This document shows positions 974 to 23,195 of a stretch of 64,000 nucleotides of DNA, in pieces (positions within the stretch are counted from its first letter, which is position 1; each line of letters opens with the position of its first letter). Origin of the DNA: Rebecca billardiae RCC1528. Its lineage: Eukaryota > Protista > Haptophyta. The notes under the pieces were generated by a model. That model was not told the DNA's origin and did no database searches. It saw only the letters and a program-made list of their open reading frames with translations. Location of the stretch: NCBI GenBank assembly GCA_965240325.2, contig OZ251229.1:1674001-1738000 (forward strand), read 5' to 3'. The translations under genes were made by a program, and so were the position numbers.

Positions 974-3689
974 GAACGAGGGGCGAAAGGTGCGCCAACG
1001 CATGAAGTTCGGCCCGCTCGGGCCAGCTCGGGCCGCAAGCACCCCCTTTGCAGCTGAAAGCTGTCTCGCCTGGGAACTCGAGACTGAACACAAGCTCGAA
1101 AGCCGATACCTTCCACGGGGTTTCGTTTCAAATCCAACCTTTCACCAGAGTTTGAAGCTTATGGCCGCGATGTTTCGGCCAATCAGCTTGCAAGCTTCAC
1201 TTTTCGTCCGTGGATCGGAAGCACTTGATTCGCTTTGGTTGCTGTCACCGGACGACACGCTCTCACAAAGTAAGTAATTCTGCTCTTTGGAAACCCGCGA
1301 AGGCGGAGCGGGGAGTTCTTCACCGGTGCTTGTCCAAGTCTTGCGCCGAGATCTTTACCGAGCTATGATATTAGTATGATAATTGCTGTTGTATTCCATT
1401 CGATTTGTTCGTGGTGCTTACAAGCAAGCGGTTGTTGATTACCCGCTAGTTCAAGTTTGGGAAACTCGATCGCGCGGAGATCAATGATCTGAGCAACCAT
1501 TGGATGCGATCAGTGCGATCCCATCAATGGGCTATCCCATTAATTCGAGCGGGGAAGTGGATCCGGGCTCGTAGTCCGGACATGGAGACTGGTCCGGGCC
1601 CAGTCACCCGGCACTCCGGCTGGCCGACACCCGGTGGCTTTCTCCTAAACCCCTGGACGGGTAAAAACGCCCCCCCCCCCCCCCCCCCTGTGTATTCCGG
1701 GAGGCCGCGACCACTGTCGACGCTGAGTCCGGGCGGCGTCGCCAAGCGGCGGCTGGAGGAGCGACGGGCGCGTGAGCGTGGCGGCTCGCGGCTATCACCG
1801 GCCTTGTGGCACGTAGTCGCGCGTGTGCGCGCCGTCACATTGCGTGTACAACACCAGACGCTGACTCCCATGGCATTGCCACGCCCTGAAGACTGCCTCT
1901 GCACCTTGTGTCTGCGTTCAAATGCTCACGAAGCTGGCTCGCGGCGCTTGTGGCAGTGCCTAGCGTGCAAGAAGCTGCTACAAGTGGTGCCATAGCACTC
2001 AAGACCCGGCCGTCACGCATGGGGCTAGTCGGGTAGGCTAATCTGTGCTATGGGCGACCAGAAAAGCAGCTCGATCAGTGATCCGTGACTCTGGAAATGT
2101 CGTGCGGCACACGCCGTTTGAAACGCGAGAGCGCGGCGCGTGCCTAACGTGACCTCTTTCAGGCGGCTTGCGGGGTCGAAAGGCCAGCGCGCGTGTACGT
2201 ATACATTGTGCATACATACCCCCACCTCCCCGAGCCATCTCATCGCGCCCAGGCTCCCCACATGTCGAGTCGGCTGGCAGGACGTGACCGCTCGGCACAA
2301 GCTCAAGCCCGCAAGTGGTTGCGCGCGCCAACCGCAAGGGCGACGAGCGAGGAGAGACATCAGCGGGCTGCTTTGTCGACGTTCCCCTACGTCTTGGGGC
2401 CCGCCCCGCCCAGCGTGCCGCCACGGAACGCCCCGCAATCGACCGCTAGGACGCTCGGCGAGCACGCACCCACCGCCGCCACGGCAGCCGTCCCCCGAGC
2501 CAGGGGTGTAGGGGACAAGCCGGTGGCCTTGGTGGGCAGTGAGCCACGGTCCTGCCAAATGCCGCTTTGGTGCCCGACTGCCCGTCTGCTCCCGGCCGAG
2601 TCCGCCATCGTATTACGGCCCTTGCTCGGCGGGCATTACTCGCGTGATGCGAATGCGATGGCGGAGAGTGCCAGCCAGCCAAGGGCCAAGGCCCCAAGTC
2701 CCCGACTTCAGTTGACGCCTTACGGGGCAGCTCCCGGACTCGGCCCGAACCTGGACTCGGCCTGAAATGCGAAAGACGCCGCCTGCGAGCGGGGATGAAT
2801 GGTAGAGAAGCGCAGCACCGCTGGCGAGAGGCCGAAGGCTCGCCGGCCGAACGGTTGAGCTGCGAGTCCGTCATGGTCGTGTCCTTCATCGGCCTTGACG
2901 GCACGGTGCAGCTCGTGCAGCTCATCTTCAACCAGAAGTACGTCAGCACCGCGAGCAAGTGACCTACTACCTGTTTGCACCGAAGAGAGAGTCGACGCCC
3001 TACCAGGAGCGGATCGATCAGCAGGGACGCACACACACACACACACACCTCCCCCCTCGTAGTCGCCCATAACTCCATCGCCGAGCGGAAGCCCGCCGCA
3101 CCGTCAGTCCGTCTGGCGACGACGCGTGCATGCCACCGCGGCGATCGCGGCGCCACGCATCGTCTTCGTCAGCCGTCGTCTCGAAGTAGTCGTCATGTGC
3201 AGCGCGCCGCTGGCGCGTGCCCCCGGGTGCACGTGAGCCATGCGCGTGCGGGCGATGAGCATCTTCATCTTGGCGTGGCCACGCAGGCAGCAAATGCCCA
3301 GCTCGCGCCGCGGATGCCGACAAGAGTGCTGACTGCCGAGCAGCACTCAGCGTGATAGACAGCTATTAGCAGTCCACTGTACTTGTACTTAATCGTGTTT
3401 CAAAGTGAATCTGCGCCGGGCAGGCTCTGGCACCGGTTGACCCCTGCCAGTCCGCGGTCATAGAAACCGGCGGGCGCCTACAGTTTACTACGTTTTAACG
3501 TGCACACTTGGTTAAGGCCGTGATTGACGCCATTTGCGGGGTGTGGAATAAGCGAGTTATACTATACCCAGACTGTGTGTTTGCTATAGAAGCCTTTCTA
3601 TGGGAAAATTGAGGGGGTGGCGAATACAGCCTAGCTATAGGGTAGAGTGCACCTAACCATGCCCCAACCATGATGATACTAGTACATGC

Positions 3690-4790
3690 TGTGAGGATCA
3701 GCATGGCTGCCGGCTCTCGGTCTCGGCCAGCGACGAGGGGGGACGGGGGTGCCTATCCAACCTAACCAGCCAACCATGTTTCGGCAGCCGGCATGAGGAT
3801 CAGCATGGCTGCCGTCTCTCGGGCTCGGCCAGCGACGAGGGGGGTGCCTATCCAACCTAACCAGCCAACCATGTTTCGGCAGCCAGCATCGGAGGATCAG
3901 CATGGCTGCCGGCTCTCGGGCTCGGCCAGCGACGAGGGGGGTGCCTATCCAACCTAACCAGCCAACCATGTTTCGGCAGCCAGCAAAGTGAGTAGGATCA
4001 GCATGGCTGCCGTCTCTCGGGCTCGGCCAGCAACGAGGGGGGTGCCTATCCAACCTAACCAGCCAACCATGTTTCGGCAGCCAGCATGAGGATCAGCATG
4101 GCTGCCGTCTCTCGGGCTCGGCCAGCGACAAGGGGGGTGCCTATCCAACCTAACCAGCCAACCATGTTTCGGCAGCCAGCATGAGGATCCGCATGGCTGC
4201 CGCCTCTCTCGGGCTCGGCCAGCGACGTGAGGGGGGTGCCTATCCAACCTAACCAGCCAACCATGTTTCGGCAGCCAGCATGAGGATCAGCATGGCTGCC
4301 GTCTCTCGGGCTCGGCCAGCGACGAGGGGGGTGCCTATCCAACCTAACCAGCCAACCATGTTTCGGCAGCCAGCATGAGGATCAGCATGGCTGCCGGCTC
4401 TCGGGCTCGGCCAGTGTGAGTGACGAGAGGGGTGCCCATCCAACCTAACCAGCCAACCAAGTTTCGTCGCCAGCAAGTGCGAGCATGAGCAAGGCTGCCG
4501 GCCGTCCATGCGTCCCGTGCGTCCGCGCGGCCGCCGCGGCCGGCCGGCCTGGACTCACGGGACGCGAGAGGGGTGCCCATCCAACCTAACCACCCAACCA
4601 AGTTTCGTCGCCAGCATGAGCGCCAGCATGGCTGCCGGCTCTCAGCCAGTCGGCTGGTCGTGAGATGGTTGCCCATCCAACCTAACCACCCAACCATCGT
4701 GGTCAGCATGCGCGAGCATCAGCATGGCTGCCGGCCCCCACCGAGCTTTGAGAAGTGGGGTGTGCCAACCTAACCTAACCACCCAACCAT
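3690..4790. repeat. Tandem array of ~95-100 bp units containing CCAACCTAACCAGCCAACC, degenerating to the right; an inverted copy of the core lies at ~5406-5448
   Basis: The unit GAGGATCAGCATGGCTGCC...GGGGGTGCCTATCCAACCTAACCAGCCAACCATGTTTCGGCAGCC recurs about 8 times intact, plus 3-4 degenerate copies. Confidence 0.95.
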
Positions 4791-5869
4791 TTTCTCGTGT
4801 GCGCGTTAGTTAGCGCACGTCGCACGAGCGCAGCTGGTCCGTGCGGTGCGGGAGCTCGTGCGAGCAGCCACACTGCGAGTCCAGATTATGGCGGCGGGGA
4901 CGCTACCGTCGTTTTCGCGCCGCTGCCGCTGCAACTGCTGGAGCGGCACCACGGCGGCTCGCCACGCGGCGCCGGCGCTGCTCGCTCGCGGTCTGGCACG
5001 CTGGAAGAAGTCGTGTGCGGATTGTTGTTGACAGACGCAAAATGGGGCGCGGGGGCGGGTGGGGCAGCTCGAGCCAGCTGACGCGCGGCATGCATCATGC
5101 ACAGCGGGGAGGTCTGGGATGCACACCTCTCGTGCTGTGATCGAGGCGCGCGCAGCCCCGCGGAGGCCGCGGACGGCGTTCTCAGTAAGCCGCTGGCAGC
5201 AGCAGTGCGTGTCCGGCAGCGGGGAACAAAATGGGGGCGCGGGGGCCGCGGCACGTGCGCCCTCGCGAGCGCCCGCATCGAGAGCATCGCGTCTTTGCCG
5301 CTCCTGGCGCAGCCACTACCGCGCCCGTCCCGGCGCTGCGCTGGCTCGGGCGGCGCGGGCGTCGCTAACGCCGATTCGCTTGATGAAAGGCCGCGAGTCC
5401 GCTCCGCGACGAAACTTGGTTGGGTGGTTAGGTTGGATGGGCACCCCACGTTCGTCGTCAGGCGGCAAAGCGGCAGCCATCTTTATTCAGATCACATCAT
5501 CAGCGCATTGTTTTAATGTTTTTGAAATGCTTTTTTAAGATTCTTAGCTAGCACGGGTGACGGGTCCGGTAATCGCTGTCCGGCTGGGAAGGTTAGCTGG
5601 TTAGGCACCAGCCGGCTGTCCGGTGAACTTGGTAGTAGGTCCGGTAGCGCAGTCCGGCTGTGATGGTTCGGGGCACTGGCTCTCTGTCCGGCGACCTTGG
5701 TTAGGTCCGGTGATCGTAGTCCGGCTGGCCACTCTTGGAATGGTTGGGTGGTTAGGCTGTGGAAGGACGTTTTTGGGCCCCAACCAAATGTGGTGAGTAA
5801 CCTGCTTACGGAAAAAGATTACTCCGGTGTGACTCGCTTCCGCATGGTCCATTTGCGATGTGGGGGGAA

Positions 5870-8693: not shown

Positions 8694-8995
8694 ACCCATA
8701 GCTATAATGCAGGTAGGGGCGGCGGCTTTCGTGACGGTTACAGAGTGATGCATATGAGATTCGGCGGGCGCGCAAATTGATCGGGTCCTGCCATGCGTGT
8801 CCTGCCACGGCCCTTGGTCCTGCAGGGATTCTCGTCGTCGTCCAATAAAGTAATAGCTGGCGGCTCGCCTGCTGCAGGCTGCTACTGGGAGATTCTGCTG
8901 GCGCACTCTTCGCGGGGCGGTGGCTGCGCCGCCACCTCGGTCGACGTGCCGGCACGCGCCTGCCTACTGACCGGCAACTGGTGGTGCCGCGTGAC

Positions 8996-11900
8996 ATGGA
9001 CGAGCAGCAGAAGCCAGTGGACGACGACGTCGGGCGCCTCGCCAACAACGTGCTCCTCTCGGCACCAGTCGCGCCCGCGGTGGGCATGCGAGGGAGTGAT
9101 GGCCGCCGTTCGCGCGGGCGGCCGACAGCGGACGATACGACGCTCATCCAACCGATCGCGCGCTCTCCGAGCCAGGAGTCGGACGCTGGAACCCGTGGCG
9201 GAGTGTTCCTTCAGCCCGTCTCGTCCACGATCGGCATGAGAGGGAGCGATGGCCGCCGCTCACGCCGGCGCTTGACGGAGGACGACGTGACCATCCTGGG
9301 GCTGATTGCACGGGATCCCCATCAGGAGCCTGCCGCCGAACGCCCTGGCGACGACCACCTCGTCCCGCAGCCCGTGACGCCAAAGATAGGCATGCGATCG
9401 AGCGACGGCCGCCGCTCGCGCCGCCGCTTGACAAACGACGACATGACCTACGCGCTACGCGAGCACATCAAGTCGCAGGCCGCGATCTCAGAATCAGCAC
9501 CGCTCGACGCTGATGAGCACTTCGATCGGGGGCGCGATGCGTTTCTCGTGGACGAGGCCGCGACGGAGGATGCGGAGCGCGTCGAGGGCGGCGAGGGCTT
9601 CGACAGCTTGCCCGTGAAGGCGGGTGGGCGCGATGCGGACGACATCTCGGACGCCGGCTCGGCGCCGGACGCTGCTGCTGCTGGCGGCGCACACGCGAGC
9701 GCCGGCGATGATCAGGACGACGCGTTGATCGAGCTCGAGCTGTCCCTCACATCCGCCCTTGACGAGATGCTCGCGACGCCGGAGCCGGGAAAGAACGAGG
9801 CCCTGATCAAGATGATTCTATCGTTGCCGCCGGCAAAGCGCAGCAGCGTGCAGCGCGACCGGCTGCGCGAGTGCATCGGCGGAGTCAGCTTCCTGGCCAT
9901 CCTGGATGACGAGGAGCTGCTCACGCACATCTTCAACGGCATGGAGTACCGCGCGTACGCGCCCGACGAGCAGATCGTCTCGCCGACGGGCACCCCGGAG
10001 GCCGTGTACATCGTGCTGCGCGGGAGCGTCTGCCTTCAGGAGGCGCCGCTCGGCGCGACTGCGGTCGACCCAGACCTACTCGCGCGCGGCCAGGTCAGCC
10101 ACCGGACGACGAGGCTTGCACCCGAGACTTCCTGGGGCCAGCTTTCGCTTGTGGAGAGCCACATGCGCAATGGGTACTCCGCCACGGCCGCCCACGTAGG
10201 GGGCTGCGCGCTGCTTTTCATCCCGCGCAACGTGTACCAGCGCGTGCTGCCGACTTTTGAGAGGCGGATGCGGCACACCGTCGCGCTGCTGCAGAGCACG
10301 AAGACGTTCGGGAACTGGGACACGGACTCGCTGCAGCGGCTGTTTGTCGTCTTCGAGCGCCTCTCGCTCGCCGAAGGGGATGTCCTGTGCAACCAGGGAG
10401 AGGACGCCAACTTCTGCTTTTTGATCTCGCGCGGCGCATGCGGTGTGTACATCAACGTCTCCGAGCGCGTCGACGAGCAGCCCACACAGCCGTCGGCGGA
10501 GTCGGCCGACTCACACGACGACGACAACAATGATGAGGCGCGAGCTGAGCAGTACGTGACGCGGCTCCGCCAGGTGGCCGTCCTGCAGGCGGGCACGCTC
10601 GTGGGCGAGACGGCGCTGCTGTTCCCGGGGCAGAAGCGCAACGCCACCATCATCTCGCACGGCGCCGAGGTGCTGCTGCTCACGAAGCGCGACTTCCTCT
10701 CCCTCGACGAGGCGACGCTGCAAAACATTCGCCTCAACTCGAGCTTCACGGCAGCGTGCTCGATGAAGCCGGAGCACCGCGAGACGACTCACATCGACGC
10801 GCTCGTGGAGAAGACGCAATCTCTCGACTTCTTCAAGCGCATGGACGACGGCGCGCACCGCGACCTGTGCAAGCGCCTGCTCTATCTCAAGGTCGAGCCG
10901 GGCGCGCGCATCATCGCGCCGCCGCCGCCCGGTGTGTCTGAGGTGCCTGACGACACGAAGCTCGGGAAGCTGCGCAGCGAGGAGGGCTCGGCATCGGCGG
11001 GCTCGGACGTCGTCGTCCTCCTCTCGGGGGAGGTCTCGACGGCTGTCCACCTCTCCGTCGACGTCGCCGGCCGATATCGCTCGGGCGTGCTCCGCCCGCC
11101 GCCGCAGCCGCAGCCCGCGATCGACGACCAGCAGCTGCCGGCGAGCGCGCCAGCGAGCACAGCGGCGGCGGCGCGGCTGGGCAACAGCAACCACAAGTGG
11201 CACACGCAGGTGTCGCACCACTTCCAGATCGAGCGCACGGTGCGCACCGGCGGCGCCTTCGGCGAGATGGCTGCCGCGCTCGGGGAGGAGGGCAACATCA
11301 CCGCCACCGCTGTCAAGGAGACCGAGCTGCTCGTGATCAGCCGCGACGACTACGAGCGCTGCGGTGCGCTCGAGCGCTATCTCGGCGCGCACGAGGAGGT
11401 GGCCAACTTCCTGCTCACAGTCGACGTGTTCCGCGCGCGCGCGCCGCACCACGGTGGGCGCGGCGCAGGCGATCGCTCCGAGCTCGACGAGCAGCTACCC
11501 GCGCCGGAGGCCTCCGCACGCGACTACGTGTGCATCGCACCCTTCTTCGGGCGCGCGCACGTGCCGCGTGGCGAGGTGGTCGCCGCGTCTCGCAAGTTGC
11601 GCAGGGACCGGTGCATGCTCGTGATGAGCGGCGCGTCCAAGTTCCGCGTGGACGGCGCCGAGCTGTATCGGGAGCGGATATGCACCATGCTCGCTTCGAT
11701 GCCGCCGGAGCGCACGGCCGCGTCCTTCACGGCTGCCATGAGCGCCTCGAGCACCGCGCACGAGCTGCGCGCGATCGTGGAGGGCAACGGGGAGGGCACC
11801 GACACGCTCGAGGCGCGCCGCGCGCGGGCGCGGGCACATCCGACCATCGCCGAGGCCATCGCGGCCGTCACCTCCGCGCGCGCTGGCGGCAAGCTGCTGC

Positions 11901-12901
11901 ACGTCGCCGTGCTCGGCGCTGGCACGCTGCTCACGGAGGAGACACTGCTCGACCTCTGCCCAGAGGCGCCGTGGTCGATCGCCGCCGAGACCGCGCTCGA
12001 GACCCTTCTCATCGACTCGGCCGAGCTCCACCGGATGCTCACGCCGAGATCGCGCGAGGTGCTCGCGGGCAAGGCCGCCGCGACGCGCGCATGGGTGTCT
12101 GCGCGGCTCGAGTCGTGCATGCAGTCGCGCGTGCAGCACTCGCCGATCACGGCTCACCTGTGGGGGCGCGGCGAGAGCTCGAGCGCAAGGGTTGGCGGCG
12201 CGGGCGACAAGGCGGCGGCGGCCAGCACGTCGGTGCTCGAGCTGGTCAAGCTGCGGAACGCGCCTGCCCCCCCCAAGGACGCGGCCGCCACTGCTGGCTC
12301 GTCCGCGGGCGGCGGTGCGGCCGGCTCGGTGCGCCTCAGCCAGCTCGCGCGTGGGCGAGCGCCCCTCGCGGTGCCGGCTGCCGCGCCCCTCATCTCGCGC
12401 ACCGGCTCGGCTGGCACTTCGCCAGCCAGGCGTAGCCCCGCGCGGCTGCTCACCAGGGCCGTCGATGCGCAGGCGAGCCAGCGGCCAGCGACCAGCCCGG
12501 CCCTCGCCCTTCCCGCGCCCAGCTCGACCGAGCCCCCGCTGCCGACGTCGCCCTCCAAGTACGCGTCCAACCGCGGCGCGGGCGCGCAGGCCCACATGCA
12601 CCTGCGGCCCAAGGTGCACCTGAACGACGGCGGGAGCCCTCCGCCGCCAGCCATCGGCGCGCTGCAGGCCGCCGAGCGGCGCGCTGCGCGGCGGCTGCCG
12701 CGCTCCGCCCCACACTCGCCGGTGTCCACCTCGCCAGCGCCCACCGTGGCGACTGTCGAGCTCGAGGTGAGCGGAGTGCGCACGCGCGCTCGCGAGCGCC
12801 CCGCGAGAGCTGGCATGGGCACGCTGCCAGCTCTCGATGACCGCCACACGCAAGCTTCCCGCGCGGATAGCGCCTCGCCCACCGGCGGCCGCGCCAGCTG
12901 A
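8996..12901 (+). CDS. Protein with four cyclic-nucleotide-binding (cNMP/CAP_ED) domains and disordered N- and C-termini
   Basis: Long single ORF. Domain 2 reads EGDVLCNQGEDANFCFLISRGAC...VGETALLFPGQKRNATI (canonical phosphate-binding cassette). The other three (VYIVLRGSV..SWGQLSL; LLSGEV..AFGEMA; LVMSGAS..LLTEETL) are degenerate. First ATG is at 8996. Confidence 0.9.
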   Translation: MDEQQKPVDDDVGRLANNVLLSAPVAPAVGMRGSDGRRSRGRPTADDTTLIQPIARSPSQESDAGTRGGVFLQPVSSTIGMRGSDGRRSRRRLTEDDVTILGLIARDPHQEPAAERPGDDHLVPQPVTPKIGMRSSDGRRSRRRLTNDDMTYALREHIKSQAAISESAPLDADEHFDRGRDAFLVDEAATEDAERVEGGEGFDSLPVKAGGRDADDISDAGSAPDAAAAGGAHASAGDDQDDALIELELSLTSALDEMLATPEPGKNEALIKMILSLPPAKRSSVQRDRLRECIGGVSFLAILDDEELLTHIFNGMEYRAYAPDEQIVSPTGTPEAVYIVLRGSVCLQEAPLGATAVDPDLLARGQVSHRTTRLAPETSWGQLSLVESHMRNGYSATAAHVGGCALLFIPRNVYQRVLPTFERRMRHTVALLQSTKTFGNWDTDSLQRLFVVFERLSLAEGDVLCNQGEDANFCFLISRGACGVYINVSERVDEQPTQPSAESADSHDDDNNDEARAEQYVTRLRQVAVLQAGTLVGETALLFPGQKRNATIISHGAEVLLLTKRDFLSLDEATLQNIRLNSSFTAACSMKPEHRETTHIDALVEKTQSLDFFKRMDDGAHRDLCKRLLYLKVEPGARIIAPPPPGVSEVPDDTKLGKLRSEEGSASAGSDVVVLLSGEVSTAVHLSVDVAGRYRSGVLRPPPQPQPAIDDQQLPASAPASTAAAARLGNSNHKWHTQVSHHFQIERTVRTGGAFGEMAAALGEEGNITATAVKETELLVISRDDYERCGALERYLGAHEEVANFLLTVDVFRARAPHHGGRGAGDRSELDEQLPAPEASARDYVCIAPFFGRAHVPRGEVVAASRKLRRDRCMLVMSGASKFRVDGAELYRERICTMLASMPPERTAASFTAAMSASSTAHELRAIVEGNGEGTDTLEARRARARAHPTIAEAIAAVTSARAGGKLLHVAVLGAGTLLTEETLLDLCPEAPWSIAAETALETLLIDSAELHRMLTPRSREVLAGKAAATRAWVSARLESCMQSRVQHSPITAHLWGRGESSSARVGGAGDKAAAASTSVLELVKLRNAPAPPKDAAATAGSSAGGGAAGSVRLSQLARGRAPLAVPAAAPLISRTGSAGTSPARRSPARLLTRAVDAQASQRPATSPALALPAPSSTEPPLPTSPSKYASNRGAGAQAHMHLRPKVHLNDGGSPPPPAIGALQAAERRAARRLPRSAPHSPVSTSPAPTVATVELEVSGVRTRARERPARAGMGTLPALDDRHTQASRADSASPTGGRAS

Positions 12902-14223
12902 AACCAACGCGCGCGCACGTCCCAGCCGGGGCGATGGCGTCGTGTCGGCGCCGGCCGCAGAGAGGTGAGTGTGACTTGTGCGCCGCGCGGGCCAGGCGCT
13001 GTGCGACTGCGGATCGGTAGCGGTGATGTGAAGTTTTATTATGACAGCCACGCCAGTATTATTTTTATCGGGCGTCCGGTCCGGTGCCGCCGACTACCGT
13101 AGTACTCGCGGCTAATCATGACAACGCGTATCTAGCATTGGCAGCAGCATGCAATATCGTGCCAGCAATGATGATGGTAGTAGTAGTAGTAATAGTATAA
13201 GCCATGTTATTATTATTCTTGTCACTATTGGCGTGCGCAAGCTGTGATGCGAAGCAGGAAGCTGTTGCCAGGCTTCGAGTGGCACCATCCGAGGCCGGCA
13301 GGTTACACGCGTATGTTACATACAGTTGTACTACGTGTCCGCGCCTTCCTACGACGACAAGGTCAGGCAGTGCTACTAACGTATACCTCGAGTGGCGAGT
13401 GGTCGGCTGTATCGCTGCCGCACACCGTGGCCGACCAGTGACTTTCTCGGGGACTGACGCGGCCGCGGGCTGCGGCGGCCAGTCACTCAGCCCGACTGTC
13501 AGGCTGTCCGGTGAGTCGGCAGGGGTAACAATGAACCAGGGTTGCTTAGGCACATCCGAGCATCGAGGAGTCCTCGTAACTCAACGCGACGCGCGTGGAG
13601 TCCGTACCGAGGGTGGGGATAGGCCGAGTATGCGAGACTTGCTTATTCTCAGCAGCAAGTATATGCGTGCACATGATACACTTGGCTGATGTGCGATATT
13701 ACCACGGAAGGTCTCGCTCTGCTGCCCGAACGTGGCGTGATGTTCCATGTCGACCTTGCGTGATGTTAGACTGCTGGCGTCGCCGCTCGCGCATCGCCAG
13801 TCGCGCCGTGGCCGTCGTTCTAGAATCGATAGCATGACGTCTACGTCGACATCTCCCACCTCCGTGTCGTGGAGGCCATGTGCGACGGGCGGCCAAGGTG
13901 CATGTCTGTGGGGGCATCGCAGGACCCATCACCCGAGCAGGGTCGTTTTGTGGCGGGTACAAAGGTGGTTTACATGCAGGATGCTCTTTAGTAGTGAACC
14001 TGAAGCCGATGACCGACACGAGTCGCTCACACTAGTACATGTCAATCTCGCCTGCCTGAGCTGTGTGCGTCTCGTATTCTTAGTAAATTGTATCAATATT
14101 CATCGCGTCATACGACTCTACAACTCTGACATTCAAGAAGGGCTGCCGCCACCTCGCCAGACCGACCACTGCGCCCGTGAACCAAGGGGGTATCCGTGCC
14201 AACCCAACCCCGGCCCCGCCGCC

Positions 14224-17200
14224 ATGCGCGCCGTCGGGGGGCTGCTCATCGGGCTTCTTCTGAGCATTGTTCGCGCGGAGAATGGCACACTGGCCTCCGC
14301 CGTGCAGTGCGAGGCCGGCATGTTCGCGCATGTGGGCGCCGGCGGCTGCGAGCCGTGCCCGGCGGGCCACGTCAGCGCGGCCGGCGCGAGCGCGTGCACC
14401 CCGTGCGCCGCGGGCTCGTACGCGGCGGGCGGCCTGATGTGCCTCGCGTGCGAGTCCAGGACGTATCAGACTCGCGCCGGCCAGAGCTCGTGCAGCGAGT
14501 GCCCGCAGCACTCGGAGCATCGCGCGCAGCGCGCTGATGGCTCGCATTTCCGCGAGGGCGCAACGGGCGCCACGTCGATCGACGATTGCGTGTGCGAGGA
14601 GGGCTTCGTCAAGATGGGCGCGGGCGGCTCGTGGTCGTGCAGGCCGTGCGTCGAGGGCATGCAGTGCGCCGAGGCCGGCGCGGAGCTCGCCACCGTGCCG
14701 CTGCTCCCCGGCTACTGGCGCGGGTCGGCGCGCAGCGTCGACGTGCGCGCGTGCCCGCGCGCCGACGACTGCGTCGGCGGCTCTGACCCCGCGTCGTACT
14801 GCGTGCGCGGCTCGACGGGGCCGCTCTGCGACGCGTGCGTGGAGGGCTGGTTCCGCACGACTTCCGGCGTCTGCGCGCCGTGCAGCCCCGTCGATCGCTA
14901 CCCCATCGCCCTGCTCGCCGTGGCCGTGCTCGCTCTTCTCTCGTTGCTGGCGGCGCTGACGGCGCGCGCGCTGCTCGCGTCGTCGCGGCTCGCGGCGGTG
15001 TCGGGGCGCATCGAGCGCGCGGCTTCGCAGCTGCTGCGCAGCGGCGCGCTGTACCGCGCGAGCGTCCACTTCCGCTCGGTCTACGCCTTCGCCCAGGTCC
15101 TCGCCGCGCTCGACCTCCACAAGGACGTACTCACGGCTTACCCGGCGCTTGCCGGCGCTGTGCGCTCGCTCCGAGTGATCAACCTCGACGTGACCGAGGC
15201 GCTGGGCTCGCGGTGCACGGCGGTGGGGCTCTTCGCGCGGCTGTACGTGCTATGCCTGCTGCCCATCGCCGCGCTCGTGCCCGTCGGCGCGTACCTCGGC
15301 GTCGAGGCGCTCCTCACCTTGCGCCGCGCGCGCGCGCTGAGGCGCGCCGCGGGCGCAGACCGGCCGACGCGGCGCCGCATGCGCGCCGCCGCGCAGCAGC
15401 GCTCACTCGCGTCGGCGGGGATGCTGCTGGCGCGCACGGCGCTGTACTGCTCGTACGCGGTGGTGCCGTCGATCATGTCCGGCGCCTTCCGCTTCTTCGA
15501 CTGCGTCGTCGTCGACACCTCCGCCCCGGAGCCGGACTCGGCGCGCTACCTGCGGCACGAGCTTGCGGTCCCGTGCGGCACTGCGCAGACCGGCGGGGCG
15601 CTCGCCTTCCTCGTGGGCGCGATCTGCGTGTACGGCGTGCTCGTGCCGGCGGCGCTGGCGCACGCGCTCGCGCCGCGCTCCGGCCTCGGCCTCACCCTGC
15701 TCTCCACCGGGTACAAGCCCACCTTCGTCTGGTTCGAGGTGGCGGAGACGGTGCGCAAGGGACTCATCGTCGGGCTTTCCGTGCTCGCGCGCACGCGCGC
15801 GGTCGGCCGCGGGCGCGCGGCGCTCTCGGCGGGGCGCGAGACGCAGCTGCTGTTCGCGTTCACGGTGCAGGCGGTGCACACGTTCCTCTTCTCCCAGGTC
15901 TCGCCGCTGCACTCGCCCGAGGCGATGGCGGTGGGCGTGGGCGTGCACACAGCTCTCTCCCTAAGCCTGGTGCTGCTCGCGCTGCTCGCGGCCGCCGGGC
16001 GCGGGGACGAGGGCGCGGCCGGCGGCGCGGCGGCGGGCGCGGTGGTGACGGCGGCGCGCGCGCGCACGCTCACCGCGTTCGCGGCCGCGCTCGTTGCCGG
16101 CGCGCTCGTCGCGGCGTACGCCCTCGTCATGCACCGCGCCGCCATCGAGGCCGAGCGCGCCAAGCGCCAGCCCATCGTGCTCGTCACGGCGCCGGGCGAG
16201 GATCTGGATGGCGAGATGGCGCTGCTGCTCGCCAAGTGGATGCAGGAGGAGGGGCTGGTCGACCTGAAGGCGGTGGTCGCGAACCTGCACCCCGCGCGCA
16301 CGCGCGCGCGCCTCGTGCGCGGCGTGCTCGACGCGCTCCGCCTGCAGCACGTCCCGGTCGGCGTCGGCACCGACGGCGGCACGACCGCGACCGCCGACAC
16401 TTTCTCGGAAAGTGCCTCCCACTATATCTGCCCGCCCAACTCGGCGCGCGCGGCGGCGCTCGAGCCTGCGCGCGCGCTGCTGCACCGCACGCTGAGCGCG
16501 GCGCGCGACCGCTCGATCACGCTCGTCTGCCTCTCCTCGCTCAAGGACGCCGCGCTCTTCCTGCGCGACAACGGCGAGCTGTGCGCGGCCAAGCTCAAGC
16601 GAGTGGTCGTGATGGGCGGCGTCGCCCCCGACTGGCACGCCGGCTCGGAGGACGGCGAGACGTGGCTCAAGCCGGACAACGCGCGGAACAACCGGCTGGA
16701 CGTGGGCGCCGCGAACTACTTCTACTCCGCCTGCCAGCACGCCGGCATCCCCATGTCCATCGTCACGCGCCACGCGGCGTGTGCAGGTGCGCGCGCGCGC
16801 GAGGGGCGCGCGAGCGCGGCCCACGCACGCACGCTGTTGGCCGGCAGCGCGCTGAGGCGCGCGCGCGCGCTCGCTTGCCCCGGCGCGCAGCACCCGTACC
16901 ACGCGAGACGTACGACTTCCTCGCGCAGTCCGGCAGCCCGATCGGCTGGCGGCTGCGCAAGGCGCAGCGCGACAACATCGAGCTGCTGTGGCGGCGCGCG
17001 TGCGCCGCGCCCGGCTCCGAGCTGCGCGGCGACTTGCCTGAGCGCTGCTCGCGCGAGTGGTTCATCAGCACCTTCTGCGTGGGCGACGTGGGCGAGCGCG
17101 ACGGGGAGGACGCGATCTGGGACACGATCGCCTCGTTCCAGCTGTACGACGCCACCGCGCTCGTCGCCGCCGTCCCCGCGCTCGCCTCCTACCTCTTCAA

Positions 17201-20200
17201 CCCGACGGCGGTGCGGATCTCTGGCGTGGAGCACGCGATCGTGGGCGAGAGCGAAGAGGAGCATGGCGTGCGCTCGGCGCGCGACCTGTCGTCCTTCATG
17301 CTGACGGCGATCGCCGACGCGATCGGCGTGCAGGCGGGCGCGCACGCGGGCTCGTCGCACGTGATCGTCGTGCTCCTCGACTCGCCCACCGCCTCGGCCG
17401 TCCCCGCGCTGCTGCTGCTGCGCGCGCTGCTCGACCTCAACATGCTGCAATGCGATTCGATGCTTATCGTGCGCGAGCGAGGTGGCGCGCCGCCGCGCGC
17501 CGGCCGCGGCGGCGGCGGCGGCGGCGGCGGGAGCGCGGACGCGGCGGGCTCGGGCGATGCGGTGCGGTGCGCCGAGTCGCTCGGGCTCGCGACGCTCACC
17601 CAGCTGCTCGTGGTCGACGACGACGCGACCTTCGCCAGCCAGCACACGCGCACGTCGTCTGTGTTTGTCTCGTCCAGCCGAGTGCGGCGGCACACGGCTG
17701 TCGGCTCAGAGCTGTCGGCCGCGGCGGCGAGCGCCGACGCGGTGGAGGCGCTCGCGGCGGTGTACGAGTCGGTGGGCGTGCGCACGCGCCTCGTCGTCGG
17801 CGGCGCGATCCCGCTCGCCCTCGCGCGCTTCGCCCGCGAGGAGGCGCTCGTCTTCCGCGAGAAGACGGAGAGTGTCGTGGCGCTTGGCGAGTTTGAAAAC
17901 GCGGCACCGCCCGCGGACGGCTCGGCGTGGGGGGACTTATTGGCGGCGGCCGGCGGTGGCGGCGGCGTGGAGGGCGAGGAGGGCGGGGGCGGCGGCGCGG
18001 GGCTCCGCCGGCCGCGCTCGCGCGCACCGGCGGTGCTGGAGGTGAGCGCCGGCGCGGAGAGCCTCCGTGCGTTCGACAGCGGTCGGATGAGCGGCGGCGC
18101 TGGCGGCGCGAGCGGCGAGGGCGGCAGGGCGCGCGTCCCCGGCGTGGACGCCTCCGCTGCCGACGAGGACGACGAGCTGCCAAAGCCGCGCGCGCGCAAC
18201 GGCGGCGGCGGGAGCCGCTCCGTCGCCTTTGCCGCCGCGCTGAGTGCCGAGCCGGCGGAGCCGTGCACGCCCACGCTGCCGCCCATCGACATGCCGCGCA
18301 TGCCGCAGCCGCCGCCGCCTCTGCCGGGCCTGCCGCCGCGTGACGCGCTCGGCAGAGTCTCGCGCTCGCACACGAGCTCAGGCTCGTACTCCTTCCGGGG
18401 CCTGCGCGGCGTGGTCGGCGGCGGCGCGGCGCGCACGTCCGCCAACTTTGGCGGCGTGGGCTCGTCGCCCACGCCCACGCCGCGCTGGCCCGGCCTCTGG
18501 TCGCGCGTGAGCGGAAGCCGAACCAGCGGCAGCCGAACGAGCGCCAGCCGATCGAGCGGCAACGCTGTGGAGCTGCTGTGGAACGCCGTGCGCGGCTCGT
18601 CGCCGAGGGGGCGCGCGCGCTTCGCGGCGGATCGGCAGACGACCGACGGCCCGGACAGTCGGCGCGCGTGCCTGCTGCAGCCGCACCGCGGCGAGGCGAG
18701 CTCCAAGGCGGCGAGCGCTGCAGCGCAGTCACTCACCGAGCAGTGCGCCGCGTTTGGCATCCCGATGCGCCTGGTGTCCGCGCAGCTCGCCGACGAGTGC
18801 GCGCTGCCCTCGTGCCTGTACGACGAGCTGAGCCAGCTCGCCGGCGAGATCGGCGGCGTCGCGCACGGCGCGGTGAAGGCGGCGACGCTCGCGACGTGGG
18901 CCGAGGCGCACGCGCATCCGGACGAGCGGCCGCCCGGCGGGCTGCCCGCTCAGATTGACGCGGACTGGTTTGAGGAACGCTACTGCTCGGGCGCGCGCGC
19001 GGAGACGGCGGCGGAGGCGTGGGCGCTCGCGCGCACCGTGCCGTTCCCCGCGGGCGCGGTGCTGCTCGCCGCGTCCGACCGGCTGAGCGCGCACTACCTG
19101 CGCGAGCTCGACGCCCTTCTGCTCAAGGCGGTCCGGCACGTCTGGCTGGGCGGCGCCGAGCTGTCTGAGCCGCCGTCTCGGCCGGTGTTCCTCGCGCAGA
19201 TGCTGGCCAAGGCGGCGATGCACGACCTCTCGCACTTCAGCACCGGCGCGGGCGGCGGCGAGCCGGCGCGCGCCAGCGCCGCCGAAGCGGCCGACGGCGG
19301 CTGCCGCAGCGCGCCCACGGCCACGGCGGTGCCAGACTCGTTGGCGCAGCAGAGCTGGGAGGCGGGCCGGCGCGGCAGCGCGCTCGCCGGAGGCAAGAGG
19401 CGGCTGCCGGCCGCGCTCACGCTCAGCGTCGACGGCCTGGGCACCTTCGAGGTGAGCGACGCGCTCCCTGCCTTCCTGCAAGGCGGCGCGCTCTCCGCGG
19501 CCGCGCGCACGGGCTGGCTCGCCCCCTTGCGCCTAGCCTTCAACATGCGAGCGCCGCTGGCGGAGGCGGGCGGCGCAGGCGCGGCGGCTCTGCTCTCGCC
19601 TGTGCGGGGGGGCCCGCGCTCGCCCGATCGGGAGAGCCGCCGCTCGCGCGGGCCCCGGCGCGGCGCGACCGTCACCACCATGTTCCAGCAGGCGCGCCTC
19701 GAGATGAAGGATGCGGACCAGATGGGCGAGACGTCGCGCGAGCGCTTCGAGCGCGTGCGCAACGCGGCGCGCACCGGCGCCGCGCCGCCGCGCGCAGTAC
19801 GCGCGGGCGAGCCGTCGGCCGAAAAAGAAAAAGGCGTGATGCCCATTGAGGGCTACGTGCGCAAGGCCTTTGTGCCCGAGAAGCTGCTCCGGCGGCTCGG
19901 GCCCGCGCCGACGGCGCACGGCGCGCGCGGCACCACGGGCAGCTCTGAAGGGGACGCCGGCTCCGGCCGGCGGGGCAGCACCACACCGACCGGCCGCTCG
20001 CGCTTCTGCAGCTGCCGGCCCGGCCGGCTGTCGGTGCAGCCGGGCAAGAAGCGCACGTCGCCGCTCAACGCCTCGCTGCGTCATCCGCCGGGCGCGAGCG
20101 CGACGGACGCGGCGCTCGACGAGTCGATGCCTCGCGTCGGGCACCAGCGCTCCTCCGACTCCGACAGCATGCAGCAGCCGTGCGAGGACAGCGCGCGCCC

Positions 20201-20693
20201 GCCGCGCCCGTCACGGCTGCCGCGCCCGTCGATGGTGCCCGCGATCACTCCGACCTTGATCTCGCGCCTCAGCAAGAGAGCGTCGCCGGTGCCGAGCCTG
20301 CGGCGCGGCTCTGGCCTGCCGGACGAGTGCGTCGTCATCGGCGGCGGCGGCGGCGGCGGCGCGGATCACGACTGGGAGACCTCGCCCATGCTGCTGCAGC
20401 ATCGCTCGGAATTGCTCGTCGCGCGGAGCGCTTCGCAGCCCGGCACCGAGCTGACGGACTCGCAGGGCGCGTCATGCAGCTCGCGGCACCGGGACGGCAG
20501 CAGCAGCGCGGTCAGGCTGCCGCACGTGCCCTCCGGGCGGGGCGCTCGGTTGCGCTCGGTTGAGAGCAGCTCGTCTCGCTCGCCCGGCAACTCGCCCGCG
20601 TTCCGCCTGCCGCAAGGACCGCCGCTTCCTGGGAGCGCAGCTGCTGGCGGAGGCAGTGCGGACGTCAGCGCGGACTTTGACGAGATCGTGTGA
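14224..20693 (+). CDS. Membrane receptor-like protein: signal peptide, GCC2/GCC3(ephrin-receptor-like) Cys-rich repeats, ~8-9 TM protist TRP-like module, two cytoplasmic IU-nucleoside-hydrolase (XopQ/HopQ1-like) domains, low-complexity tail
   Basis: Signal MRAVGGLLIGLLLSIVRA; CxxCPAG repeats; GYKPTFVWFEVAETVRK TM motif; NH-like IVLVTAPGEDLDGEMALLL...RARLVRGVLDAL...VVVMGG...LYDATAL. Intron 16787-16890 (GTGCGC...GCGCAG) joins ORF 13747 to ORF 14835 in frame (HAACA-APVPRETYDFL). Confidence 0.85.
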
Positions 20694-20781
20694 CGCGACG
20701 ACGACCTATTAAGTACTGCTGCATATAGATATGCTCATCATCGCGCGTCGTCGATGTCCGGGTATCATCCGAGCGTGCACT

Positions 20782-23195
20782 TATGGCCCGCGGTGTAGGG
20801 CGGAGCGCGTAGCGTGGAGCCCCGCCGGGGGCCCTCACTACGTTGTCAAAAAGATCTTTTGATCAAAGAAAAGGGGACGGGGGACGATTTTGAGGGGTGT
20901 TGGAGGGTGAGTTTTCGCTTTTTCGAGGGGTACGTTGGCCCATAGTGCTCTGCATTAGCAACTACGCGCTTGACGAAATAAGCGCGCCCACGCCATTCCG
21001 CATAAGTCGATGGACGGACGTGGGATCAGATACCCCGGGGGTGAAACAAGTGAGTATTTTTGTCATTCTTGTATGCTGGAGTACGAGTTTGCCGAGCGAC
21101 GTTTGATTGTTTTGGGTCGAAAACAGCTATGAGGCCAGATGCTTCTGAATAGCGCTTTGTTTAAACACCTACCCGCCTGTCTCGATGGATGAACCGCCCT
21201 ATAATATTAAAAGAGATTCTTTTGAATAGCGCTTGTTCAACCACATTACCCGCCTGCCTCGATGGATGAACCGCCTGTGCACTAATATTAAACGAGATTC
21301 TTTGAATGGCGCCTATGGCGGCTTGTTAAAACGTAACAAGTTACCCGCCTACAAACCGGGCCTAAGCGCAACCTTTTGAAAGTGCATGTTGATGTGCATG
21401 GTCAGGGTCCTCCTCAACTACTGCATGTCGGCGTACTGCGTGCGCGCGCGGCGCGCTGTTATTTACCGATGCATCACTTGGTGCTGGAAACATAGGCCAT
21501 ACACGGGCACTTGGAAGTGATCAAGTTTTGCTACCTATTCGCAATAAGTTGGATACTGGGAGCCGCCAGGCGCGCGCGGGGCGCCCTACGCTCACTTATT
21601 CGACCGAGCACGGACGGCCCTCGACTCTCGAGCTGCTCGCTCGCTCGTTCGCGTTCGCTTCGTCGCTGCGGCGCCCTGACCGGGGACGTGCGTGTCGGCG
21701 CCGCGTACGCCGCGGTGCGCGCGCGGTGGCGGGAGCCGGCCGGCCGCTGGTCTCCCCCTCGCGCTCTGCTCTCGCCCTCGCGCTCCGCTCCGGCTCTCCC
21801 CGAGGCGTCGCGCGCGTCTCGCTCGGTCCGGTCCGTCGCCAGGCCGTGCCGACGGCGCGCCCACAGCGCCCCGCTGCAAAGCATGCGCGACGAGATCGCG
21901 GCGGCGGGGGCGGCGAGATCGCGGCGGAGGCGGCGGGCAACAGCCTGCCCGCGGGCGTGTTCGTCGCTCGAGGAGGAGCGCGCAAGGGCGAGCCGAGTCC
22001 GGAGCACGCTCACGAGCTTGTCGCTCGGACGCTTCGAGGATGAGTGAGCGCGCCGAGCACGCAGCGGAGATGAGCCGGATGCGCCCGGAGTTCGCGCAGC
22101 TGAAGGGCGAGCTCGAGCACGCGAGCTCGCTCCTCGACGCCGAGCGCGAGCTCCTCCTCAACTCGGTCGACGGCGGCGCTGAGGTGCAGCAGCGTGAGGA
22201 CGAGCAGCCAGCCAGTCCCGAACGCTCGCAAGACACTGCTGCACGCAAGCGGCGGCCACGTAGCGCGAGGAGCTGCGCTGGGAATGCGCCGCGCGCGTCG
22301 ACGCGGCGATCACCGGGCTGCAGGCCTCGGCCGTCGACGCGTTGCGCACCCTCGCCGCCAGCCGCGACGAGTCCGCCGTCGAGCTGCAGCCGAGCTGCAG
22401 CCGAGCTGCGCGCGCAGATGGGCGGCGTCACAGGCACACAGACACTGACAGACAGGCCGTGCATGCCAGCACGTGCGCGCGGAGGCGCTGTGCGCCGAGC
22501 TGGCGAAGCGCGACGCCGAGCGCGACGCGCTGCGCGACGCGGCGACGGACGCGCTGGGCGCGCGCGGCGCCCTCGTCGCGACGCCCCGTGCAGCAGCTCG
22601 AGCAGCCAGCTGTGCGGAGTAGACGGCCGTCGAGGCGATCGGCGCCGGTTCAGGAGCGCGCACAGGCTCCGAGCCTGCCGTTGGCTGGCCGCCGCCGTCT
22701 TCGAGGCCGCCGACGCGGCGGAGGAGGCGGCGGGCGAGCACGGCGGCGCGGTGGAGCAGGCGCGCACGCGCGGCGGCAGGCGCGACGCGCCGCTCGCCTC
22801 GTTCCACCCCGAGCTCCGCTCGCTCGGTCTCGGTGCGCGGCTGCGCAGCGGCAGGCCGGGGCAGCCGAGTGGCGCGCGCTCTCGCTCTGCCGGCACGAGG
22901 CGCGCCGGCTGAGCGACCAGCGGCCCGTCGTCGAGCGCATGGCGCAGCGCGAGCACCTCAAGCAGGTGCGCCCGCACGCGCGCACGCGCCGGCCCGCGCC
23001 GCGCGGCGCCTCTCGCCCTGCGCGCGCGCGCCGCCCCAGCGGCCGCTTCCCCGCGCGCGGCCCGCGCGGCGACAGTCCTCAGGCGAACTGTTACTCACAT
23101 GTCAGACTGACAGTGACAGCCGACGGCCGACGGAGGGTGCACCGCGGGCCTCTAACTGCGTTGGTTCTACGGAAGGACCGCGGAACGCGGTCATA
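20782..23195 (+). mobile_element. Non-autonomous Helentron/Helitron2-like element A carrying a decayed gene fragment
   Basis: 5' subTIR GGCCCGCGGTG (20785-20795); 3' subTIR CACCGCGGGCC (23140-23150), followed by terminal hairpin GACCGCG-GAA-CGCGGTC (23176-23192). Internal ~78-bp tandem repeat at ~21145-21310. Both ends are shared with 43667-47619. Confidence 0.75.
21883..22970 (+). pseudogene. Frameshifted Ala/Glu/Arg-rich coiled-coil gene fragment inside element A
   Basis: Coding-like segments in shifting frames (EHAAEMSRMRPEFAQLKGELEHASSLLDAERELL; AAVFEAADAAEEAAGEHGGAVEQAR; VERMAQREHLKQ followed by a GTGCGC donor-like site), with stops and frameshifts between them. Confidence 0.55.

Follow-up and report, generated by a model that had tools for sequence, protein, structure and literature searches.

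A predicted membrane protein of the haptophyte Rebecca billardiae carries a tandem of XopQ-type hydrolase domains with incomplete calcium motifs

What does a eukaryotic gene do in which a multi-pass membrane body is followed by two domains of the XopQ type, and can these domains still be enzymes? The question is raised by positions 14224–20693 of the window, i.e., the whole 64,000-nucleotide stretch of Rebecca billardiae RCC1528 DNA analyzed here. An earlier note, made from the letters of the DNA, had joined two ORFs across a 104-nt intron into a single protein of ~2100 amino acids. The two ORFs are separated by a +2 shift of the reading frame. GC3 was 0.90–0.98 in the frame of the ATG at 14224 until ~16780 and 0.85–0.99 in the frame of 16893 until ~20500, the change of frame falling exactly at the intron, and the GC3 scan revealed no codon periodicity upstream of 14200 or after ~20650. 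The phmmer alignment to XopQ in the PDB was colinear over the junction, exon 1 ending at chain position 323 and exon 2 starting at 328. The DNA of a relative, P0001/L001, is uninterrupted at the splice junction of the window gene and matches it without gaps (...AAYATPVPRE... against ...AACA-[A]-PVPRE... in the window). The intron is borne out by the frame switch, the colinear homology and the uninterrupted relative, and the locus reads as a single two-exon gene on the forward strand, with a predicted membrane protein of 2,121 amino acids (854 + 1 + 1266) as its product. The DNA of this region is 75% GC, a composition at which long ORFs arise by chance. Searches were run on the exon pieces separately, and in the tree the two halves of the first HopQ1-like protein (HLP) domain (D1) were joined by X. 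The features are listed in Table 1.

Table 1. Features of the predicted gene, in window positions
Feature	Position	Strand	Evidence
Start codon and signal-peptide-like N-terminus, aa 1–18	14224..14277	+	GC3 onset at first ATG; hydrophobic h-region
Cys-rich ectodomain, aa 19–225, ephrin-receptor-like/TNFR-like repeats and DUF7630-like unit	14278..14898	+	Pfam
Multi-pass membrane body, aa 226–636, ~9 hydrophobic segments	14899..16131	+	Hydropathy; homology to P0199/P0100
HLP domain D1, N-terminal part, end of exon 1	16171..16786	+	phmmer PDB, NCBIfam XopQ
Eroded D1 Ca/ribose motif A-P-G-E-D-L-D-G (family, D-x-x-x-D-x-D-D)	16189..16212	+	Sequence and census
Intron, 104 nt, GT-AG	16787..16890	+	Sequence; GC3 frame switch; colinear XopQ homology; unbroken in relative P0001/L001
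HLP domain D1, C-terminal part, start of exon 2	16891..17348	+	phmmer PDB, NCBIfam XopQ
Decayed second HLP domain D2, exon-2 aa 153–785	17349..19247	+	BLASTP, alignment, AF2, Foldseek, VIA-align, tree
Ser/Arg/Gly/Pro-rich C-terminal tail and stop codon (20691–20693)	19248..20693	+	GC3, composition
Conserved motif after D2, V-D-G-L-G-x-F-E-x-S-D-A-L-P-x-F-L	19428..19478	+	Also in P0168, P0021

The N-terminus is hydrophobic and signal-peptide-like as read from the sequence (h-region then ...VRA/EN), in line with the signal peptide claimed earlier. The ectodomain, likewise described beforehand as Cys-rich, matched Ephrin_rec_like (PF07699) in three stretches with 35.3 bits when scanned alone (gathering cut-off 23.1) and with 26.3 bits when scanned inside exon 1; the Pfam match to DUF7630 reached 26.1 bits, the cut-off being 27. 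Hydropathy analysis of residues 226–636 showed six strong and three weaker hydrophobic segments, with peaks near residues 238, 291, 345, 412, 469, 514, 549, 584, and 626, which is compatible with the 8–9 TMs that had been proposed. Ectodomain residues 113–225 align with P0199, and the membrane body was found to be homologous to the bodies of P0199 and P0100 (E 8e-15 and 1e-6) by pairwise BLASTP, carried out after shared motifs had been spotted by eye. The body gave no Pfam match at E ≤ 10 and no PDB sequence match in phmmer, and P0199 gave no Pfam TRP match at E ≤ 10. For residues 1–645, a word-indexed homologue search came back empty, a metagenome locus scan yielded 98 pattern matches of which none was confirmed, and phmmer against the fetched proteins and the six frames of the window returned the gene itself only. 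Language-model features placed the body beside Ephrin_rec_like/TRP (PF06011) clusters (0.91–0.95), whether the ectodomain was included or not. A TRP nature of the body (PF06011; fungal Flc/Pkd2-type) is a lead only, drawn from these features, all alignment-based tests having failed. Comparable multi-pass bodies exist without HLP domains in the language-model feature clusters, which fits an autonomous membrane function of the body.

The D1–D2 tail is probably cytoplasmic, as judged from the hydropathy TM count and by analogy with relatives: the type-I relatives P0145, P0006, and L001 are arranged as signal peptide, ectodomain, one TM, basic linker, and then HLP, and in many relatives no TM segment is predicted on the N-terminal side of the HLP domain.

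For this region, the earlier note had claimed an IU-NH-fold domain from ~16170. A fold of the XopQ type was found, with the start of D1 near 16171. Searches with phmmer matched the N-terminal half of D1 to XopQ chain 7jlu_B (residues 125–323, E 2e-18) and the C-terminal half to XopQ 4p5f (residues 234–374, E 8e-9), XopQ chains being the only matches of the two halves in the PDB sequence search. The identity between D1 and XopQ, estimated from the alignment, is ~30%. The NCBIfam XopQ model gave 1.2e-27 and 4.6e-20 for the N- and C-terminal halves, respectively, with RihA at 2.3e-4. Two identities were tried and rejected. As a canonical IU-NH (PF01156), exon 1 scored 30.8 bits, below the gathering score of 34.2, exon 2 had no match, and the DxDxxxDD motif is absent. 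As a XopQ type III effector (NCBIfam equivalog NF041355), the scores were 96.8 and 71.7 bits, under the curated cut-off of 500, and the gene has a spliceosomal-type intron, a signal peptide and TMs.

HLPs are defined by a non-canonical Ca motif, DxxxDxDD (PMC11685791). In D1 it reads AxxxDxDG, the first Asp being replaced by Ala and the last by Gly, and the eroded stretch TAPGEDLDGE pointed out earlier is indeed present at 16186–16215. A census of the relatives' domains showed all four Asp in 127 of 155, the first Asp in 144 and the last in 138; the combination seen in D1 of the window gene occurred in 0 of the 155. The two missing Asp are the sites of published mutations: XopQ D116A was reported to be biochemically impaired (bioRxiv 10.1101/2021.07.05.451090), and the HopQ1 double substitution D107A/D108A abolished Ca binding and destabilized the fold, D108 being the counterpart of an IU-NH Ca ligand (PMC11685791). 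XopQ itself is a Ca-dependent 2′cADPR O-glycosyl hydrolase that is inactivated in the D120N/D399N mutant, and according to the same 2026 preprint it destroys 2′cADPR, a TIR-made messenger of plant immunity (bioRxiv 10.64898/2026.06.15.732069); the protein has also been crystallized with ADP-ribose in the site (PMC8910321). Hydrolysis of 2′cADPR is known from bacterial XopQ/HopQ1 only. Of the XopQ site, D120, D122, and D399 still have their equivalents in D1, which also keeps the PDxxxNN block. The D399 equivalent is the Asp at 17148–17150 in the sequence LYD (exon-2 residues 84–86), and YD is kept in 107 of the 129 aligned C-terminal halves of relatives. Some residual Ca binding or activity of D1 would be compatible with these retained residues.

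A second, more decayed copy had been recognized by eye, and several results agree with it. The C-terminal half of D2 matched that of D1 in BLASTP (E 6e-7); the N-terminal half gave no significant BLASTP match to its D1 counterpart, and a sequence search of D2 against the PDB returned spurious low-complexity matches only. In the family alignment, the whole of D2 aligns to the second domains of relatives; D2 of P0006 also runs colinear with it. Neither the Asp motif nor the PDxxAQNN block is left, the YD motif is gone as well, with PFPAG at its aligned place, and low-complexity inserts are present, the largest of about 270 aa at ~17895–18707. The AlphaFold2 model of D2 reached pLDDT above 90 over 212 core residues and stayed below 50 in the inserts. 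When this model was compared with known structures, as the earlier note had suggested, XopQ was the top match in Foldseek (E 2e-9), and VIA-align superposed 295 residues on XopQ with a Z of 28.2 and an rmsd of 2.9 Å; Z was 25–28 for XopQ as against ~20 or below for canonical NHs. In the tree, D2 joined the decayed D2 domains of other proteins at 99, on a branch of 2.43 (the third longest). D2 is more decayed in the window gene than in most relatives, and its long low-complexity inserts could reflect relaxed selection. The motif after D2 also occurs in Diacronema lutheri P0168 (residue 1280) and P0021 (residue 726). The C-terminal tail comprises 480 aa of low complexity with GC3 of 0.85–0.96 in frame until ~20500 and has no Pfam family at E ≤ 10; it is predicted to be disordered.

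The gene belongs to a large algal family in which the D1–D2 module is placed on interchangeable sensing or signaling parts. Among 1.84 billion representative proteins, 840 relatives of the N-terminal part of D1 were found, from haptophytes, pelagophytes, and diatoms; a homologue search with the whole of exon 2 gave P0001 only, low-complexity words having swamped the candidates. The tandem HLP architecture is almost universal in long family members, usually as one intact and one decayed domain, and the clade of decayed D2 domains is retained across lineages (99 in the tree). The HLP tandem of a close relative was modeled as one rigid unit (pLDDT 89, pTM 0.87). HLP tandems are fused to other ectodomains with a TM, to cyclase-STAND-TPR proteins or to cNMP-binding domains, with STAND fusions in P0104, P0114, and P0129. 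P0145 (ANF_receptor), L001 (OpuAC), and P0006 (Laminin_G_3 and cadherin-like) combine a classical ligand-binding ectodomain, one TM, and an HLP with an intact motif. The whole architecture, from the ectodomain over the TM body to the HLP tandem, recurs in a metagenomic gene of a second organism, P0199/L002, in which D1 is decayed too but D2 is intact.

An algal HLP clade has already been published from heterokonts and haptophytes, including Aureococcus, Thalassiosira, and Emiliania (Piechocki et al., 2018; PMC6019455), and the present relatives come from these groups. In that paper an HLP is taken to be one NH domain, and neither tandem duplication nor an attachment to membranes or to other domains is brought up; no published description of fusions to membrane or sensor parts was found. 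To the earlier note this architecture was unfamiliar from described proteins; it is not a one-off, as HLP tandems and receptor fusions turn up often in public algal data. With the algal members of the HLP clan, which belongs to the nucleoside hydrolase superfamily, the gene shares the XopQ-type NH fold in D1 and D2, far nearer to XopQ than to canonical IU-NHs; it differs in that the domain is duplicated and lies behind an ectodomain and a ~9-TM body, and in that DxxxDxDD has been eroded in D1 and is missing from D2. With XopQ/HopQ1/RipB, type III effectors of plant-pathogenic bacteria, the gene likewise shares the fold and a good part of the active-site framework. XopQ, however, is a secreted, monomeric, single-domain bacterial protein, whereas the gene described here is eukaryotic, with an intron, a signal peptide, TMs, and two Asp of the motif missing.

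On sequence grounds, a pseudoenzyme tandem is the best reading, because neither domain has a complete Ca/ribose motif. We tentatively favor, partly by analogy, a non-catalytic tandem that binds a ribosyl nucleotide and is coupled to the membrane body within one two-exon gene, although this reading is held at somewhat less than even confidence. Neither HLP domain would hydrolyze in the window gene, as D1 is without the first and last Asp of DxxxDxDD and the D2 motif is wholly lost. Since ADP-ribose is bound and 2′cADPR hydrolyzed by XopQ, the tandem would most likely serve in the cytoplasm to bind an ADP-ribose-type nucleotide or to regulate in response to it; this most likely ligand class is extrapolated from bacterial XopQ at ~30% identity. 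TRPM2 is a channel gated by ADP-ribose via its inactive enzyme-homology domain NUDT9-H, and a nucleotide signal could, by analogy, be passed from the tandem to the multi-pass body. The two would be alike only in how they work, in that a multi-pass body is combined with a cytoplasmic degenerate homologue of an ADP-ribose-processing enzyme; the body described here is, however, at best a Flc/Pkd2-type TRP (PF06011) by language-model features and not a TRPM. A more specific scheme can be drawn, namely, a channel gated by an ADP-ribose/2′cADPR-type nucleotide, with a Flc/Pkd2-like body and the dead XopQ-type tandem as its sensor. In algae it would correspond to TRPM2/NUDT9-H, and it would take its place in a TIR-like nucleotide signaling network of haptophytes, where the same messenger would be broken down by live HLP paralogues. 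Taken as a whole, this scheme is unlikely.

Inside-out gating is at least as plausible as an outside-in receptor, since the multi-pass body also occurs without HLP and its language-model features lie near TRP (PF06011) proteins. What the earlier note had proposed, a receptor with an NH pseudoenzyme as its output, stands as regards one gene, the XopQ-type fold of both domains and the incompleteness of both motifs; its outside-in direction is only one option. The Cys-rich ectodomain would then sense an extracellular cue, with the HLP tandem as its intracellular output, in the form of a non-catalytic scaffold or of a regulator that pairs with active paralogues, in the manner of pseudokinase receptors. 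Natriuretic-peptide receptor guanylyl cyclases consist of an ANF_receptor ectodomain, one TM, a pseudo-enzyme domain, and then a cytoplasmic catalytic domain. Their layout is copied by P0145, and a dead and a live domain in tandem are common in the HLP family, but the window gene is multi-pass and without an intact catalytic domain, and its fold is that of a ribosyl hydrolase, not a cyclase. P0145, L001, and P0006, with a single TM and intact motifs, resemble receptor-enzymes whose output would be the HLP module, which speaks for the outside-in direction, and D1 of the window gene groups with P0006 at 99 in the tree, which makes the cytoplasmic module common to such receptors. However, the membrane part here is a ~9-TM body instead of one helix, bodies like it are also found without HLP, and both HLP motifs are incomplete; outside-in signaling is possible, yet somewhat doubtful. 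A membrane-anchored hydrolase that is still active would have D1 binding Ca and cleaving a 2′cADPR-like ribosyl bond, so as to end or modulate a nucleotide signal, and D2 would be its structural partner. In its favor, D1 keeps the equivalents of the D120 and D399 pair mutated in dead XopQ, as well as D122 and PDxxxNN; the L002 homologue of the same architecture has one fully intact domain; and one intact beside one decayed domain is the rule in tandem relatives. Such an activity is nevertheless improbable in view of Ala and Gly at positions where the published substitutions impaired XopQ or removed Ca binding from HopQ1, in a combination shared by none of the relatives' domains.

Loss of the motif from both domains, the long D2 branch, and the low-complexity insert and tail would also be expected of a decaying paralogue with little or no function left. 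Against this, the frame of 2,121 codons is unbroken with strong codon-position GC bias throughout, the fold core of D2 is still predicted with high pLDDT, and the motif after D2 is conserved in distant relatives; mere decay is quite improbable. Separate membrane and soluble HLP genes wrongly joined, or the integrated decoy of an immune receptor, are accorded hardly any probability. The gene model does rest on DNA sequence of a composition that yields chance long ORFs, but with a break at the intron the hydrolase fold would be split midway (XopQ 323/328), GC3 switches frame exactly there, and the same fusion recurs in L002. The decoy, raised in the earlier note, had to be given up, as there is no NB-ARC/STAND or LRR chassis in either exon.

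An NLR with an integrated decoy was likewise rejected as an identity, Pfam revealing no NTPase, LRR or TPR family in either exon. PADLOC defense models matched neither exon, nor the downstream neighbor (24418–26937, minus strand), nor P0007, and Pfam and PDB-sequence searches gave no support for a TIR/HET-like identity of the neighbor either.

In the window gene, nature has mutated two Asp whose importance is known from experiments, so that the gene is a good test of whether an enzyme fold has been converted into a sensor. In haptophytes, pelagophytes, and diatoms the XopQ fold recurs widely as a cytoplasmic module, doubled into a live-plus-dead tandem, and the family bears on the origin of the bacterial effector family. 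It suggests that such algae may run an uncharacterized second-messenger system derived from ADP-ribose, and the HLP fusion proteins are concrete places in which to seek such a messenger.

The gene at 14224–20693 (plus strand) lies in a region of ~75% GC crossed by two long plus-strand ORFs. The flanking spacers (13000–14200 and 20700–21500) fall to 49–62% GC, so that gene boundaries of this genome are visible by composition alone. Read in frame with the ATG at 14224, GC3 is 0.90–0.98 between ~14200 and ~16780, and it is 0.85–0.99 in the frame of 16893 from the junction to ~20500; no codon periodicity was found upstream of 14200 or past ~20650. The change of frame coincides with a 104-nt GT...AG interval (16787–16890), the intron which the earlier note had proposed to join the two ORFs. 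In the alignment with the bacterial type III effector XopQ, exon 1 ends at chain position 323 and exon 2 starts at 328. The closest relative, P0001 (on the 5-kb JGI contig L001), is uninterrupted at the junction and gapless against the spliced window protein. The predicted splice is thus supported by three independent sequence arguments: the GC3 switch, the colinear XopQ match and the read-through of P0001. The predicted product is 854 + 1 + 1266 = 2,121 aa, in agreement with the ~2100 aa estimated earlier. A split into two genes was rejected, as a single hydrolase fold would be halved at the junction. The features are listed in the table.

Features of the window and of related public sequences
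Sequence	Feature	Coordinates	Strand	Remarks
Window	Upstream neighbour ORF	8981–12898	+	1,306 codons; cyclic-nucleotide-binding domain (Pfam cNMP_binding, E 4e-21)
Window	D1, first HLP domain	16171–16786 + 16891–17348	+	XopQ-type homology
Window	D2, second HLP domain	17349–19247	+	Much more diverged than D1
Window	Downstream ORF	24418–26937	-	840 codons; signal-peptide-like start, ectodomain, multi-TM block, C-terminal globular region
Window	Ordinary metabolic gene	28215–30218	+	Glu_synthase PF01645, E 1e-74; adjoins receptor-like genes
L002	Cys-rich + TM body + tandem HLP gene	1077–5788		Same strand as preceding ORF 313–1266
L001	Fusion partner of HLP	1–1600		OpuAC-type substrate-binding protein domain (Pfam, E 4e-8), one TM, HLP with intact DAGEDMDDE
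P0006	Fusion partners of HLP			Laminin_G_3 + cadherin-like + TM (Pfam)
P0145	Fusion partner of HLP			ANF_receptor + TM (Pfam)
P0135	Fusion partner of HLP			VanZ (Pfam)
P0104, P0114, P0129, P0220	Fusion partners of HLP (P0220, inferred)			Guanylate_cyc + AAA_16/STAND + TPR (Pfam)
P0113	Fusion partner of HLP			Three cNMP-binding domains (Pfam)

Residues 1–18 of the window protein look like a signal peptide. They are followed by a Cys-rich ectodomain (aa 19–225) with an Ephrin_rec_like match of 35.3 bits against a Pfam cut-off of 23.1 and a DUF7630 match just under its cut-off. The membrane body (aa 226–636) has nine hydrophobic segments, six of them strong and three weaker, and the N-terminal layout expected earlier (signal peptide, Cys-rich ectodomain, ~8–9 TMs) was thereby recovered. 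The body had no match in Pfam or among PDB sequences, and neither word-indexed search nor metagenome scan found relatives of it. By protein-language-model features (0.91–0.95), the body, with or without the ectodomain, adjoins algal clusters carrying Ephrin_rec_like and/or TRP PF06011, a placement that counts as a lead only. The body does have a true homologue: the metagenomic protein P0199 (828 aa, ENA) matched window residues 113–594 at E 8e-15, and its shorter cluster-mate P0100 matched the window protein at E 1e-6.

The presumably cytoplasmic part begins with D1 close to the predicted start (~16170) of a nucleoside hydrolase (IU-NH) fold. With the exon pieces searched separately or linked by X, the PDB matches of D1 were XopQ chains alone (E 2e-18 and 8e-9). 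Among NCBIfam models, XopQ gave 1e-27 and 5e-20, as compared with only 2e-4 for RihA. D1 falls far short of the XopQ equivalog cut-off of 500 bits, and its Pfam IU_nuc_hydro score (30.8 bits) is below the cut-off of 34.2. The decayed second copy seen previously is borne out by D2, the C-half of which matched D1 at E 6e-7 (BLASTP), the N-half giving no significant BLASTP match to D1, and which aligns over its full length with relatives' second domains. In the AlphaFold2 model of D2, 212 core residues have pLDDT above 90 and the inserts are disordered. Structure comparison ranks the three XopQ entries first (Foldseek E 2e-9; VIA-align Z 28.2, 27.5, and 24.7), ahead of canonical nucleoside hydrolases at about Z 20. 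A caveat is that the alignment behind this model included D1-type sequences, although placement of the window D2 in it is backed by pairwise matches to P0006, a relative (E 1e-8, 3e-6, and 3e-5).

HopQ1-like proteins are defined by the calcium motif DxxxDxDD, in place of DxDxxxDD in canonical enzymes (PMC11685791). All four Asp are retained in 127 of the 155 aligned domains of relatives (first Asp, 144; last, 138). The eroded motif reported for D1 proved to be A-PGE-D-L-D-G, a combination seen in none of the 155. Of the two missing Asp, the first is the counterpart of XopQ D116, and the D116A mutant is reported to be biochemically impaired (bioRxiv 10.1101/2021.07.05.451090). The last is the counterpart of HopQ1 D108, a residue equivalent to a calcium ligand of IU-NH; the double substitution D107A/D108A abolished calcium binding and destabilised HopQ1 (PMC11685791). 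D1 retains the equivalents of D120 and D399, the pair mutated for dead XopQ (bioRxiv 10.64898/2026.06.15.732069), as well as D122 and the PDxxxNN block. D2 is without the motif, the PDxxAQNN block and YD. D2 is judged to be certainly non-catalytic; D1 is probably so, though this is less than certain.

With the N-half of D1 as query, an exhaustive HMMER search retrieved 840 representative proteins at E<=1e-3, 81 of these at E<=1e-30. Named sources include Diacronema lutheri, Pavlovales sp. CCMP2436, Prymnesium parvum, Pelagophyceae sp. CCMP2097, Aureococcus, Thalassiosira, MMETSP transcriptomes and marine metagenomes. Algal HLPs were reported as a separate clade in 2018, in a paper that says nothing of tandem copies, membrane forms or fusions (PMC6019455). 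Nearly all long members have the tandem layout, usually with the motif in one domain and the other decayed, the decayed one differing by subgroup; P0006 and P0145 are among the relatives with an intact motif. A quick ML tree built from 54 domains groups the window D1 with P0006 (99*). It sets twelve decayed D2 domains apart from all others (99*), the window D2 pairing among them with P0001 (99*), which points to one old duplication after which the pseudo-domain was kept. The tandem of another relative, P0007, was modeled as one confident unit (761 residues, pLDDT 89, pTM 0.87), which fits an intramolecular pseudo-dimer. Past D2, the window protein carries a short motif (19428–19478) of the form VDGLGx-F/I-D/E-x-SD-E/A-LP-x-F/W, which is conserved in a Diacronema lutheri paralogue (P0168, aa 1280) and a metagenomic relative (P0021, aa 726) and may serve in docking.

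The fusion partners are diverse. P0104 and P0114 combine a class III cyclase, an AAA_16 NTPase, long TPR arrays and a C-terminal HLP; P0129 has the same parts with a single TPR_12 match. Pfam identified a cyclase, a cNMP-binding domain and an NTPase in P0220 (Prymnesium parvum), whose HLP domain is suggested by its clustering with P0065. Such STAND-type relatives resemble the NLR layout, with two nucleotide-signal domains. The cNMP-binding domain of the upstream neighbour ORF is of the type fused directly to HLP in P0113 and, on the clustering, P0220. The downstream minus-strand ORF had no match in Pfam, PDB sequences or PADLOC to back a TIR/HET-like identity, and a nucleotide-signalling character of the neighbourhood is supported in part only. 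Where there is a single TM, the helix is succeeded by a basic linker, with the HLP beginning 13–21 residues on, which places the module in the cytoplasm. The L001 reading frame shifts near 1480–1560, within the conserved RGTLD..LG..VPVG block, which suggests an intron at a position other than that of the window gene.

The P0199 gene on contig L002 changes frame several times and extends into a pair of HLP domains; hence, the full architecture is present in a second eukaryote (55% GC). Its D1 is decayed (D-VGR-T-A-D-T) and its D2 intact, an order opposite to that of the subgroup holding the window tandem. The ORF ahead of this gene has a weak dCache_1 match (37.3 bits against a cut-off of 45) and is possibly a further ectodomain exon.

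Architecture, fold, motif loss and family context are shown for the window gene, and its mechanism is inferred. The earlier note had read the protein as a receptor with a pseudoenzyme output. A pseudoenzyme remains the best reading of a tandem with broken or lost motifs; the outside-in direction, in which the dead tandem would serve as the output or would partner live paralogues, is retained as a rival account that we consider rather unlikely. Residual hydrolase activity, to which the retained D120 and D399 equivalents in D1 are relevant along with the loss of D116 and D108 equivalents, appears improbable. A decaying paralogue is more improbable still, and an artefact or the integrated decoy once suggested can, taken jointly, be largely discounted.

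XopQ binds ADP-ribose (PMC8910321), and a 2026 preprint describes it as a Ca-dependent O-glycosyl hydrolase with high specificity for 2'cADPR (bioRxiv 10.64898/2026.06.15.732069). The reading of the window protein as a sensor or regulator is the favoured one of those considered, and is put forward tentatively, as a real possibility. The tandem would bind an ADP-ribose-type nucleotide without hydrolysing it and would be mechanically coupled to the membrane body.
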